This document shows positions 28,701 to 33,450 of a stretch of 64,000 nt of DNA, piece by piece; position 1 is the stretch's first letter, and each line of letters opens with the position of its first letter. Origin of the DNA: Octopus bimaculoides (taxonomy: Eukaryota). A program made the translations under genes and the position numbers. The notes under the pieces were generated by a model. The model was not told the origin of the DNA, searched no databases, and saw only the letters and a program-made list of their open reading frames with translations. The DNA is taken from the NCBI RefSeq assembly GCF_001194135.2, contig NC_068983.1:154579935-154643934 (forward strand), in the 5' to 3' direction.

Positions 28701-28811
28701 TAAAAATACCCATTTGGTGTTCAAATGCCAATGAAGGAGCCTTGGATCTAGATTAGGGAACTAGCTATTTCTCTGTTGACAAGAATTCTTGAAACAAAAC
28801 TGAATACTGAC
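28701..28811 (+). mobile_element. 3' terminus of the (CATA)n-tailed R4-like LINE, solo copy
   Basis: AAAAATACCC..GGAGCCTTGGATCTAG.TTAG..TCTTGAAACAAAACTGAATACTGAC, flanked by (CATA)n on both sides; reverse complement of the units at 30715-32270. Confidence 0.8.
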
Positions 28812-29569
28812 AAACATACATGTACACATACATACTTACATACATACATACATACATACATACGTGCATACATACATATGTATGTACCTATATATTCTTG
28901 TATATATACGTCTNNNNNNNNNNNNNNNNNNNNNNNNNNNNNNNNNNNNNNNNNNNNNNNNNNNNNNNNNNNNNNNNNNNNNNNNNNNNNNNNNNNNNNN
29001 NNNNNNNNNNNNNNNNNNNNNNNNNNNNNNNNNNNNNNNNNNNNNNNNNNNNNNNNNNNNNNNNNNNNNNNNNNNNNNNNNNNNNNNNNNNNNNNNNNNN
29101 NNNNNNNNNNNNNNNNNNNNNNNNNNNNNNNNNNNNNNNNNNNNNNNNNNNNNNNNNNNNNNNNNNNNNNNNNNNNNNNNNNNNNNNNNNNNNNNNNNNN
29201 NNNNNNNNNNNNNNNNNNNNNNNNNNNNNNNNNNNNNNNNNNNNNNNNNNNNNNNNNNNNNNNNNNNNNNNNNNNNNNNNNNNNNNNNNNNNNNNNNNNN
29301 NNNNNNNNNNNNNNNNNNNNNNNNNNNNNNNNNNNNNNNNNNNNNNNNNNNNNNNNNNNNNNNNNNNNNNNNNNNNNNNNNNNNNNNNNNNNNNNNNNNN
29401 NNNNNNNNNNNNNNNNNNNNNNNNNNNNNNNNNNNNNNNNNNNGTTATCGACTCATCCCCTCCCCCAAAATTGTGGCAAATTTTGAGACCATTCTTCTTC
29501 TTCTTCTTCTTCTTCTTCTTATTATTATTATTATTATTATTATTATTATTATTATTATTATTACTGTGT

Positions 29570-29736
29570 GGAGGCGCAATGGCCCAGTGATTAGGGCAGC
29601 GGACTCGCGGTCGCAGGATCGCAGTTTCGATTCCCAGACCGGGCGTTGTGCGTGTTTATTGAGCTGGGGAGAACACATACGCCATAGAAACCGGGAAACC
29701 GGGTCCATGAGCCTGGCTAGGCTTTCAAAGGCGCAT
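29570..29736 (+). mobile_element. Chimeric SINE: SINE-D head joined to a different tail (T3)
   Basis: Matches the SINE-D head through GTTTATTGAGC (29664), then switches to TGGGGAGAACACATACGCCATAGAAACCGGGAAACCGGG..GGCGCAT plus an A-rich tail. Confidence 0.7.
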
Positions 29737-29756
29737 AATAAATAAATAATAAGTTA

Positions 29757-29985
29757 TTTAGGTGGCTAGCTGGCAGAATCGTTTACACGCAGGGAAGATG
29801 TTTAGCGGCACTTTGTCCGTCTGTTCGTGCTGAGTTCAACTTTCACTGGGTTCGACTTTGCCTTTCATCATTTCGAGGTCGATAAATTAAGTACCAGTCA
29901 TGTACTGGGGTGGTGGGTCGATGTAATCGACTAGTCCCCTCTCCACAAATTTCAGGCCATGTGTCTTTAGTAGAAAGGATTATTA
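29757..29985 (+). mobile_element. SINE-A copy with (ATT) tail
   Basis: Full motif set ending TAGTAGAAAGGATTATTATT. Confidence 0.9.
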
Positions 29986-30714
29986 TTGTTATCATCGATT
30001 TCTCCCTCCTCGAAATAGTTGGTCCATATACCTATAGTAAACACAATTGTTGTTGTTGTTGTTGTTGTTGTTGTTGTTGTTGTTGTTGTTGTTGTTACTG
30101 ATGTTGCTGTTGTTGTTGTTGTTGTTGTTGTTGTTGTTGTTGATGGGGTTGCTGCTACTTGTGTTACTGTTGCTGATATTGTTAGTCAAGTAGTTGCAGT
30201 GAATCAGAACCTGCAGTTTCGTGTTAATGCCTTTCTAGTAAGGAATAAAATGTTGATAGCTAGTTTATATTTCGCTCACATTACATGGAGCTTCCAAGTT
30301 AAATATCCAAAAATACTGTTGCAGATACAGTACATTCGTATGCAAAAATATATACAACATTTAATATTTCTATTACTTATTTCTTTCCTGTGTGAGTGTG
30401 TGTGGGTGTATAAACACCTGATCAGAAAATATGTATTATCACATAGGAAATTTACGCGTGTATGTAAAGGATTCCAGATATGAATCTATAGTTTGAATCC
30501 ATATCTGCAGAGCGGATGTATGTACACAAATGCTATTATGCGGTTTTCCTGTGGGTAATGGGAGAAAATGCTTACTGTATGCATATTTCTGTGAGTGCAT
30601 CTGTGCGTGGCTTAACAATTAGATGACGAGCCTTCGCAATGTCCGTGTGTGTGTGTGTGTGTGTGTGTGTGTGTGTGTGTGTGTGTGTGTGTGTACGTGT
30701 ACGTATGTGTGTGT

Positions 30715-31976
30715 GTCATTAATTCATTATGATTTCAAGACTTCTTGCCAATAGAAAAAAAGACCCGGTTTCTAAACTAGGTCCAAGGCTCTTTCATCGG
30801 AATTTCAACATCAGCAACAGGGTATGCATGTATGTATGTATGTATGTATGTATGTATGTATGTACGTATGTATGTACGCATGCATGTATGTATGTATGTA
30901 TGTCATTATTCAGTTTAATTCAAAATTTCTTGCCAATGGAGAAAAGAACCGGTTTCTAACCTAGATCCTGGGCTCTTGCATTGTAATTTCAACATCAACA
31001 ATAGGGTATTTTTGCTTGTTTGTTTGTATGCATGTATGTATGTACGTATATATGTATATGTGTGCGTGTATGTATATGTGTGTGTGTGTGTGTGTGTGTG
31101 TGTGTGTGTGTGTGTGTGTGTGTGTGTGTGTGTGTGTGTGTGTGTGTGTGTGTGTTTGTGTGTGTGTGTGTGTGTGCGTGTGTGTGTGTGTGTGTGTGTG
31201 TGCAGATTTGCATGTTTTATGTATGTATTCTCATGCATATAGTTGCATATCGAAACATGCTGATATATAGTTAAATGATAAACTTCTGGAAAGTTTTACA
31301 GATTTTTACAGTTCCAGTGATGGATTGGATCTGTAGATACAGATACATACAAATATGTAGATATGTATGTATGTATGTATGCATGTATGTATGTATGTAT
31401 GTCATTGTTCAGTTTTATTTCAAGATTTTGTGCCAATAGAGGAAGAGCCGGTTTCTAACCTAGATCCAAGGCTCCTTCCCTGGAATTTCATACATGCATA
31501 CATATATATATATACATGCGTATATATACATATATATATATATATACATATATACATATATATGCATGTATATATACATATATACATATATACATGTATG
31601 CATAATACATAGATACATGCATGCATACATACACACATACATACATACATACATGCATACATACATACATACATACATACATACATACATACATGTATAT
31701 ATGGTATGTTTTATGCATGATTTTCATGCATATACTCGTATATCTGGATATGCTCTTATATATTTAAATGATAAACTTCTAGGAAGTTTTACAGATTTTT
31801 ACAGTTCCAGTAATGGTTTGGATCTGTAGTCTTTGAATCAGCCTAATTTCTCAAGATTGGTATTTAGTCAGTGTATTACATATTCCAGTGCCTTCATAAT
31901 TACAGGTATAAACTTGAACTTGTAATCTGGAGAGAGTAACTGCAGATTTCCCAGTAGTTCAGCCTGGGAACATGTA
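30715..31976 (-). mobile_element. Three head-to-tail 5'-truncated copies of an R4-like RLE LINE (A 30715-30825, B 30902-31336, C 31401-31976) separated by (TATG)n
   Basis: B encodes LQIQSITGTVKICKTFQKFII* (31336-31271). C extends to ELLGNLQLLSPDYKFKFIPVIMKALEYV..LEKLG. All share the terminus ..AAT(A/C)ATGAC followed by (ATAC)n. Confidence 0.85.
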
Positions 31977-32199
31977 TATATATGCATGTATGCATGTATG
32001 AATGCTTGCACTTATGCATGAATGTATATATGCACACGTGTATGAATGCATGCACGTATTTATGCACGTATGTATGCACGCATGTATGTGTGTATTTATG
32101 TATATATGTCTGTAAGAATACATGCGTGCCTGCACGTATGCGTATACGTACATATGTAACTATGTACGTGCGGATGTATGTATGCATATATGTATGTAT

Positions 32200-33290
32200 G
32201 TCATTATTCATTTTTATTTCAAGATTGTTTGCCAATAGAGAAAGAGCCGGTTTCTAGTCTAGATCCAAGGTTACTGTTCCACTCACAGATTACACTTGTA
32301 ATGTACCAATTAGCCGGTCGATTTCTCTTTGTAAAAATCCCAGTTTATCCAGATTATCCTTTAAGCATTTAAGAACAAAACTTAGTGCCACAATTATTGT
32401 TGGTTTGAATATGAATTTATAGTCTGGATGTAGATGCTGGAGGTTTCAAAGCAATTGTCCATATATATCCTCTTTTTCTTTGATTTTCAAAGATATATTT
32501 ATATCTGCAGGGCAGCTGACTTCTGTGATGGTACATACGTTTGCCCCTCTGTCCCAAGCAACAATATCTGCCCTGTTATGTTTAGATTAGACAGAAATTT
32601 TAGTGGGAATATTCCACCATTATTCTTTGAGTTGCTGTTTATGAATGTATTCCATAACAGAGGGGTTTTCTAAGTTTATTTCAGGACAGTCTTTTTGCGG
32701 ATGGCATTGTGAATTGTTTTAACAACAACATCGTGCCGCATAGGGAGGTAAACAGAAGCATGAGCCTACACATGCGGTTGCGCCTTCGGATTACAAGAGT
32801 GTCATTGTCTCTCTTGTTCACCAGATATTTTTTGGTAGTCTCCTGTTCCTGGATTGCAAACGCATAGCCTTCAAAGTGTGGTGTAGTGGTCTTGTGTCCA
32901 AGAGAGACTGCGCTTCGTGTCGATTCTACTGTCTTCTTCAAGCTTCCAGGTAACATACCCATGCATAGTCATTTTTTTTTATGCTGAGCACATTCTATCC
33001 ATTTTGGGGCTGTATCAGAAATACAGTGCTTTTTGGGGATCGCACTGCCAACTCGTACAATGTTGCTCACTTCACTTTTCAGCACTGCATTTATATATAT
33101 ATTCTTGCTGCTGTTGTTTAGCAGATGCTGCCTGAGTGATACAATATGGCATTAAAATGACGTCTGCACTGATCTCAGGCTTCTACCACCTTCATTTCTT
33201 CTTAGGTACAGCCTGTCAACATCACTGTTTCTGTGGAAGTTGCAAGTTGCTGTCAGGATTTTGCAGATGGCATTGTAAATTGTTTTAGCG
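32200..33290 (-). mobile_element. Longer R4-like RLE LINE fragment (copy D) with the same 3' terminus
   Basis: Minus-strand motifs: KILT..NFHRNSDVDRLYLRRNEGGRSL; HGYV..SLSW..HFEGYAFAIQEQE; CRL; RHDVVVKTIHNAI; WWNIP; DIVAWD..EVSCP; NLQHLHPDYKF; SVSGTV. The terminal ~70 bp is joined at 32270/32271. Confidence 0.85.
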
Positions 33291-33359
33291 ATGTATGCAT
33301 GCATGTATGTATGTATGTATGTATGTATGTATGTATGTATGTATGTATGTGTGCATATG

Positions 33360-33450
33360 TACCGATTCGTATGTCTTGTTTTTGGTATATATTCTTATGC
33401 ATATAGTTGCATGTCTAGACATGCTCATATATACTTAAATGATATATATT
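33360..33450 (-). mobile_element. Fifth fragment (3' UTR) of the same R4-like family
   Basis: TTCTTATGCATATAGTTGCATGTCTAGACATGCTCATATATACTTAAATGATA matches 31228-31280 and 31720-31775. Confidence 0.7.

Follow-up and report, generated by a model that had tools for sequence, protein, structure and literature searches.

Long interspersed nuclear elements (LINEs) with a restriction-like endonuclease (RLE) and a specific insertion site, such as R2, R4 and Dong, are models for target-primed reverse transcription and are now developed as gene-insertion tools. Specificity for microsatellites is known for a number of LINEs, including Dong, some HERO families, Togen with (TG)n, Kibi, Koshi and, among elements with an apurinic/apyrimidinic endonuclease (APE), Waldo with (ACAY)n and Mino with (AC)n (PMC3812793, PMC4640811). 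Dong belongs to the R4 clade and is specific for (TAA)n, the presence of this repeat on both sides being its defining behaviour (PMC3812793). In octopus genomes, elements annotated as “LINE/Dong-R4” were reported to be abundant and recently active, with no mention of a target preference or of (CATA)n (PMC13282606, PMC8967140), and in O. vulgaris five recently active Dong-R4 families of ~4.2 kb each were found with 1129 insertions (PMC13282606). Here, we describe pieces of an R2-like LINE located at 28.6-33.5 kb of a 64-kb stretch of the Octopus bimaculoides genome (NC_068983.1; this whole stretch is termed the window in the following). We consider it likely that this region is a graveyard of dead, 5′-truncated and decayed copies of a Dong-like LINE with a single open reading frame (ORF), which integrated orientation-specifically into (CATA)n·(TATG)n, and that the stack arose by successive insertions into the tract, the tails and the internal tracts of earlier copies.

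Like Dong (Bombyx mori; DongAg; DongBg of a snail), the window lineage is a LINE whose single ORF contains a CCHC finger and a restriction-like endonuclease at the C-terminus (PMC3812793, PMC4640811), and which is embedded in a microsatellite, flanked by the repeat on either side and in a fixed orientation. Unlike Dong, its apparent target is the tetranucleotide (CATA)n and not (TAA)n, and its 3′ untranslated region (UTR) probably contains an internal microsatellite. The target repeat is the same as, or overlaps with, that of Waldo and Mino, sequence-specific LINEs of the R1 clade in insects, since (ACAT)n falls under ACAY (PMC3812793). These elements, however, carry an N-terminal AP-endonuclease, whereas the window lineage features an R2-like predicted fold with a C-terminal RLE and no APE domain in Pfam; the common target is convergence and not relatedness. 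Togen of fish, which is NeSL-related and specific for (TG)n, and the microsatellite-specific HERO families of leeches are likewise of the RLE type with microsatellite targets (PMC4640811), but use other repeat motifs, and it is conceivable that the window lineage belongs to HERO. With R2, which is specific for 28S ribosomal DNA (rDNA), it has in common the overall predicted protein fold, an apparent dependence on a structured 3′ UTR and frequent 5′ truncation, but differs in the target (rDNA vs. microsatellite), in a sequence similarity confined to the reverse transcriptase (RT) core (phmmer E 4e-27) and in the N-terminus, where the relatives of the window lineage lack the zinc finger and a three-helix bundle is predicted instead. 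The octopus Dong-R4 families of ~4.2 kb resemble the relatives of the window element in length (~3.9-4.4 kb), and the element probably falls in the LINE/Dong-R4 class of RepeatMasker. In the searchable literature, a search that did not extend to Repbase and Dfam, we found no (ACAT)n- or (ACTT)n-specific RLE lineage described.

Anatomy of the stack

Self-BLAST within the 64 kb and alignment revealed one LINE 3′ terminus of ~75-110 nt (…TGAAYWMTGAC) in five copies, termed A-E, which are 80-90% identical to each other (E-values of 1e-12 to 1e-23). The final base is common to all of them, the ends being TGAATAATGAC in D and B, TGAACAATGAC in C, TGAATTAATGAC in A and TGAATACTGAC in E. Directly behind it follows (ATAC)n in B, C, D and E, and mainly (AC)n in A. 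Both the common end and these tails, already noted in a preliminary description of this DNA, were confirmed by the alignment. The number of pieces given in that description, six of one family, needs correction, as three more pieces, X, X′ and X′′, belong to the same set. The pieces and the tracts between them are as follows.

28602-28700, plus strand: (ATAC)n (28602-28652) and a degenerate stretch upstream of E; target or internal UTR tract
28701-28812, plus strand: copy E, solo terminal module of ~110 nt, ending in TGAATACTGAC (self-BLAST, alignment)
28813-28878, plus strand: (ACAT)n tail of E
30645-30716, minus strand: (CA)n-rich tail of A, TG on the plus strand; unique flank below 30645
30717-30825, minus strand: copy A, terminal module with the same 5′ start as B and E
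30826-30903, minus strand: (CATA)n tail of B
30904-31010, minus strand: copy B, terminal module
31011-31202, minus strand: (CA)n/(CATA)n, separating X′ from B; internal UTR tract or tail of X′
31203-31345, minus strand: X′, 5′-truncated, last ~20 codons (LQIQSITGTVKICKTFQKF) and ~70 nt of UTR, ending in ..CATAAAACATGC
31346-31401, minus strand: (CATA)n tail of C
31402-31495, minus strand: copy C, terminal module without its first ~25-35 nt
31496-31699, no strand assigned: microsatellite tract of opposite polarity (CATA-type on the plus strand, antisense to the array)
31700-31980, minus strand: X, 5′-truncated, residues ~575-647 and ~70 nt of UTR, ending in ..CATGCATAAAACATAC
31981-32200, minus strand: degenerate (CATA)n/(CATG)n tail of D
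32201-32270, minus strand: D, last ~70 nt of the terminal module, joined to ORF codon ~640; CCTTG-hairpin-CCGG at 32247-32270
32271-33258, minus strand: body of D, covering residues ~271-640 of the decayed ORF with thumb, CCHC and restriction-like endonuclease; three frames, several stops
33259-33290, minus strand: extra 32 bp at the 5′ junction of D, a copy of 32693-32721 (93% over 29 bp)
33291-33350, minus strand: (CATA)n between X′′ and D, containing the 5′ junction of D
33351-33444, minus strand: X′′, UTR-only and of the X type; the 5′ side adjoins unique sequence without clear (CATA)n

The minus-strand array is bounded by unique DNA at ~33470 and ~30644 and reads, from 5′ to 3′ on that strand, X′′ – (CATA)n – D – degenerate (CATA)n – X – tract – C – (CATA)n – X′ – (CA)n/(CATA)n – B – (CATA)n – A – (CA)n. 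Its seven pieces all lie in the same orientation, head-to-tail, with differing 5′ truncation points, and the 5′ junctions of D (residue ~271), X (~575) and X′ (~628) each adjoin sense (CATA)n. The tracts are of the TATG/TG type on the plus strand, i.e., (CATA)n/(CA)n in the sense of the element, with 31496-31699 as the sole exception. The head-to-tail arrangement of the minus copies with (TATG)n between them, as described before, holds for the orientation and for the tracts in general, but not for the polarity of this one tract. For the solo copy E on the plus strand, the reported (CATA)n on both sides is present, but the upstream (ATAC)n may represent an internal UTR tract and not the target; the stretch upstream of E and the tract after X′′ have GTACATATGCACA.ATACAT in common.

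The window stems from a short-read assembly with 20 N-runs in 64 kb, and is rich in microsatellites and short interspersed nuclear elements (SINEs), both of octopus-like character. One of the gaps (28914-29443) starts ~35 bp past the tail of E and leaves all LINE pieces uninterrupted. On its right side, the sequence resumes inside a SINE copy, in the 3′ portion of the latter; genuine sequence is therefore missing here and the distance from E to the array is uncertain. The minus array itself is located entirely within a gap-free block (29444-35142).

Relatives and their flanking repeats

Relatives were collected by protein searches and by a scan of metagenome contigs (L### denotes loci or contigs, P#### proteins). 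A word-indexed search with the window endonuclease yielded a single match, P0001, on the 917-bp Logan contig L001, a 5′-truncated copy whose contig carries (ACAT)n at either end and which is 79% identical to D at the DNA level, while an exhaustive HMMER search recovered full-length proteins of ~1130 aa. The metagenome contigs L002 (4125 bp, ORF of 1172 aa) and L003 (4541 bp, ORF of 1213 aa) carry (ATAC)n at both ends, on the ORF strand, and have a precise common 5′ end, GCGCAG…GGACGTGTGGATTAYCGCTC, immediately after (CATA)n. As both represent assembled multi-copy repeats reaching ~100 bp into the same repeat at either end, most copies are expected to share these flanks. On the long-read contig L012, the element is preceded by (TACA)66 (~260 bp) and followed by (TACA)34; the full-length L020 has (ATAC)n at its 5′ end, and L005, L014 and L019 feature an (ACAT)n tail at their 3′ end. 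The repeat is also found at truncated copies, e.g., L004, which is 5′-truncated in the GGRGL region and shows (ACAT)7 upstream and (ATAC)6 downstream with unique DNA beyond. Both L001 and L004 are isolated copies with the repeat on both sides and no second element upstream.

Sense-strand (CATA)n is hence present on both sides of the full-length L002, L003 and L012 as well as of the 5′-truncated L001, L004 and L017. At the 5′ side, the repeat was found in seven of the nine clade loci in which a 5′ end is present (L014 is without it and L016 is ambiguous), and at the 3′ side in 9/10 loci, L016 ending in (AT)n. It is mainly due to these two-sided flanks of the relatives that we regard (CATA)n as target and not only as tail. 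The earlier proposal that the lineage targets (CATA)n is accordingly supported by relatives that group with the window copy at 100% bootstrap, together with the junctions of D, X and X′.

A further relative, L017 (1-10978), contains at least four same-strand 5′-truncated copies in 3.09-kb units, which are 98-99% identical, share one truncation point and are separated by (CATA)7. This stack looks like a tandem duplication of an element-plus-target unit. L017 also harbours a (CATA)50 tract and a ~450-bp minisatellite of a 15-bp unit in its 3′ UTR.

A conserved hairpin in the 3′ terminus

In all five terminus copies (A-E), the motif CCTTG–hairpin–(A/C)CCGG lies within the final ~75 nt, 45-52 nt from the 3′ end, and it occurs at the same 3′ distance in L002, L003, L005, L012, L014, L016, L017 and L019. 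The hairpin covaries, with compensatory changes in 6/6 pairs and 83% of cells paired, vs. 56% after shuffling (0/500 reach the observed value) and 24-49% with the partner slid. On the strength of this conserved, covarying hairpin, the 110-nt module appears to be the true 3′ end of the lineage and, by analogy with R2, likely serves as the handle of the reverse transcriptase. The motif is absent from the X-type ends and from the end of L001.

The simplest reading of the native 3′ UTR, in line with the internal tract noted in the preliminary description, would be an ORF stop followed by ~70 nt, an internal (CATA)n/(CA)n tract, the module and the tail. This order fits the succession of X′, tract and B, the sequence common to E upstream and the X′′ tract, and the structure of L003 and L017, in which internal tandem repeats are followed by a unique terminus of ~100-190 nt. 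With such an internal tract, both the module-only copies (A, B, E) and the X-only copies could originate from 5′ joining or priming within it. X, X′ and X′′ could also constitute a separate subfamily that ends in a (CATA)n tail of its own; this option appears less likely because the 3′ hairpin conserved among the relatives occurs only in the 110-nt module.

At the 5′ end, a self-cleaving ribozyme like that of hepatitis delta virus was shown for R4 and Dong (PMC3774820). The window itself contains no 5′ end of the element. When the 5′ ends of six relatives were scanned with Rfam, no ribozyme was found, the only matches being spurious mir-297 hits on the repeats. The 5′ UTR of the full-length L002 (149-234), L003 (~128-213) and L019 (~12-100) contains a conserved long-range helix, in which ACGTGTGGAT pairs with ATCCATTGCG and which is a candidate for such a ribozyme.

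Coding pieces and protein class

The largest coding piece, D (1.06 kb, 32201-33258), aligns to residues 271-640 of P0004, a LINE protein of ~1130 aa, in three frames interrupted by stops. It retains the motif LYLRRNEGGRSL, the end of the CCHC finger (…PMRHDVV…) and the endonuclease signature RADIVAWD…TEVSCP…KEKEDIY. X and X′ encode the C-terminus of the ORF (…GTVKICKTFxKF*), X′ with its last ~20 codons …GTVKICKTFQKF, and X, X′ and X′′ all end in …CATGCATAAAACATAC-like sequence followed by a microsatellite. The junction in D, by which codon ~640 is joined to the last ~70 nt of the module, reflects either an internal deletion or a template switch.

Pfam returned nothing usable for the window translations, as it lacks a model of the RLE and D is without the RT. 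In full-length clade members, RVT_1 is the only Pfam domain detected, with E-values of 1e-25 to 1e-27, and a Pfam search of the full-length relatives gave no APE (Exo_endo_phos) domain. The C, H, P-D and K columns are invariant across 34 relatives, and an AlphaFold model of P0175, built on a 34-sequence alignment, reached a predicted local distance difference test score (pLDDT) of 87.4 and a predicted template modelling score (pTM) of 0.79. In a Foldseek search, this model matches best with R2 proteins captured while they initiate target-primed reverse transcription (E 1e-35 to 1e-30, template modelling score 0.57-0.71). The preliminary assignment to the RLE type is borne out by these motifs, the predicted structure and the R2 matches, and, as judged from motifs and predicted fold, membership in the R2 group of retrotransposons without long terminal repeats (non-LTR) is confirmed.

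Within the N-terminal 300 aa of the relatives, neither a Pfam domain nor a zinc finger at the N-terminus was found. Here, residues 22-75 of the P0175 model form a confident three-helix bundle (pLDDT ~88), the sequence of which is conserved in the ORFs of L002 and L003; this bundle is a candidate domain for reading the DNA target, a suggestion derived from the model.

Phylogeny and target repeats

In a neighbour-joining tree of 317 C-terminal columns, the window copy falls within a clade comprising all (ACAT)n-associated elements (100% bootstrap), to which it is 40-43% identical. Nested in this clade is L011 (90% bootstrap), which, together with L015, has (ACTT)n on both sides (2299-2384/6708-6757 in L011 and ~1826-2040/6331-6447 in L015) and a common precise 5′ end, AACTGCCGRGGAGGAAGG… / AACTGCCGRGGAGGAAGGAGCTCGCTCCGTC. 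An (ACTT)n lineage within the (ACAT)n clade represents an apparent switch of the microsatellite target. Outside the clade follow L021 and then elements flanked by (TAA)n. L021 is 31% identical to D, has (AC)n/(AGAC)n before its start (1-47) and a short (AC)5 beside its 3′ end, and may thus be an (AC)n-associated lineage.

Among the (TAA)n-flanked elements, L009 carries (ATA)19 and (ATA)9 at its two ends and is collinear with L002 (31% identity over 1006 aa, E 2e-145), and an element of the moth Ostrinia furnacalis, flanked by (ATA)6 and (AAT)6.7, is collinear with L002 over >1000 aa (28% identity, E 8e-114). Compared to the window copy, identity of the (TAA)n-flanked elements is only ~21-23% in the C-terminal third. 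The named hits are all “uncharacterized protein”; an R4-like or Dong-like kinship is suggested only indirectly, by the collinear (TAA)n-flanked relatives as surrogate for a clade test. P0262 and P0290, relatives of L009, have an OTU-like cysteine protease domain (PF02338) beside the RT according to precomputed annotation.

As a tentative extension, which we hold to be possible but would not yet call probable, these elements could form a widespread Dong-like RLE clade whose target has repeatedly switched among (TAA)n, (AC)n, (ACAT)n and the nested (ACTT)n, and whose members can carry the target in the 3′ UTR, nest and build growing arrays of element plus microsatellite.

Origin of the stack and alternative explanations

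By analogy with R2 and Dong, the protein would bind the repeat and nick one strand, and the freed 3′ end would prime reverse transcription on the element RNA, which could be held via the conserved hairpin ~45-52 nt from its 3′ end. An early stop of reverse transcription would be common and give rise to 5′-truncated copies, each insertion leaving (CATA)n on both sides. Because the flanks, and probably an internal (CATA)n/(CA)n tract of the 3′ UTR, supply further (CATA)n, old copies would themselves become targets. The minus stack could then reflect successive insertions into one tract, presumably in the order X′′/…/A, D, X–C, X′–B. While the anatomy of the pieces, the protein homology, the covarying 3′ hairpin and the two-sided (CATA)n of the relatives are shown, the enzymology, the sequence of insertion events and the internal-tract architecture are inferred in this scheme. 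The self-feeding array put forward in the preliminary description fits the data but is not proven, and L017 illustrates that such stacks also grow by tandem duplication.

Several observations in the window and among the relatives weigh against insertion into (CATA)n as the origin of the stack. The 5′ junction of X′′ (~33445-33470) lies in unique sequence without clear (CATA)n, D has neither the ORF end nor the X-type UTR, and the 204-bp tract at 31496-31699 reads (CATA)n on the plus strand, which could reflect an inversion, the remnant of a plus-strand tail or a misassembly. Furthermore, all 5′ junctions in the window lie within tails or tracts of the same stack and so count as one locus and not as independent sites. 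Among the relatives, L014 without a 5′ microsatellite and L016 with its (AT)n end do not follow the pattern, and most of the short relatives are short-read metagenome contigs that end within the repeat.

Part of this would be expected if the LINE inserted nearly at random and (CATA)n were only a templated or slippage-grown 3′ tail, as in RTE-type elements, with repeats on the 5′ side being the tails of neighbours. LINE tails are indeed a known source of microsatellite families (PMC2887409, PMC3812793), each tract on the 5′ side of a window piece is readable as the tail of the upstream copy, and the missing 5′ repeat at X′′ and L014 would find a simple explanation. We nevertheless regard a mere tail as very improbable: L002, L003 and L020 are full-length, with intact 5′ ends that begin directly after (CATA)n, L012 has 260 bp of (TACA)n upstream, and the isolated truncated copies L001 and L004 are flanked on both sides with no upstream neighbour that could have donated a tail. 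Moreover, the sister lineages are two-sided as well, with (ACTT)n and (TAA)n, and the single orientation of all seven minus-strand pieces speaks against near-random insertion. Local tandem duplication, unequal crossing-over between tracts or short-read misassembly as the main source of the stack would leave the target specificity of the relatives untouched, and appears improbable for the window, too. Although the order X-tract-module is found twice, one tract is inverted, the assembly is of the short-read type with 20 gaps, and the near-identical L017 units with their one truncation point provide a precedent, the window copies are 80-90% alike and therefore not recent duplicates, the pairwise identity of the units is only 80-86%, their truncation points differ (residues ~271, ~575, ~628 and UTR-only), C and B have different 5′ ends, and the whole array lies in one gap-free block. 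It is the different truncation points and the low identity that argue for independent insertions rather than duplication.

Compatible with insertion into (CATA)n, but on balance unlikely, is the idea that the units of ~110 nt (A, B and E, in part also C) constitute a separate short non-autonomous element, comparable to the short internally deleted elements (SIDEs) of R2, which borrows the 3′ hairpin and the target of the LINE; D would then be a chimera or belong to a LINE subfamily with that 3′ end. A, B and E start at the same base (AAAATACCC…) and have ~35 nt in common that are absent from D, the final ~70 nt of the module follow immediately on codon ~640 in D, and the X-type ends are without the hairpin. 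An internal (CATA)n tract of the UTR, upstream of the module, would, however, account for the common 5′ start just as well; the arrangement X′-tract-B and the sequence upstream of E fit such a tract, and L003 and L017 also possess internal tandem repeats followed by a unique terminus.

Significance

The mechanism class, a microsatellite-specific RLE LINE, is known, and the target motif is new; the finding is incremental and adds no new principle. A clade whose members differ mainly by the microsatellite they enter, i.e., (CATA)n, (ACTT)n, (AC)n or (TAA)n, does offer matched pairs of protein and target, which could help to locate the determinants of specificity. If true, close relatives that have switched between simple targets would amount to a natural experiment in DNA recognition by R2-like proteins, and would supply new specificities for R2-based gene insertion. 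In addition, a retrotransposon that requires the repeat and at the same time generates it may be partly responsible for the load and clustering of tetranucleotide microsatellites in a repeat-rich genome, which also helps to explain assembly gaps and the failure of microsatellite markers.

Other repeats of the window

Besides the LINE pieces, the window contains a SINE family of ~250 bp with 19 copies (29444-29563, 29745-29995, 34130-34337 and 16 others) and tails of the (ATT)n/(TTC)n type, as well as a second SINE-like repeat of ~100 nt (29565-29665) with seven copies. Other (TATG)n-like tracts of the window, located at 23.1, 38.0-38.4 and 46.7 kb, showed no LINE ends that could be recognised. 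At 5650-6692, (ATAG)36 follows immediately on a very long (GAGT)223 array, and in the relative L012 an (ATAG)70 array likewise adjoins the (TACA)66 target tract. Finally, a 21-bp tandem repeat, GCAGATAGCTAGATCAAATGA, is present at 63067-63191 in six copies with 98% matches.

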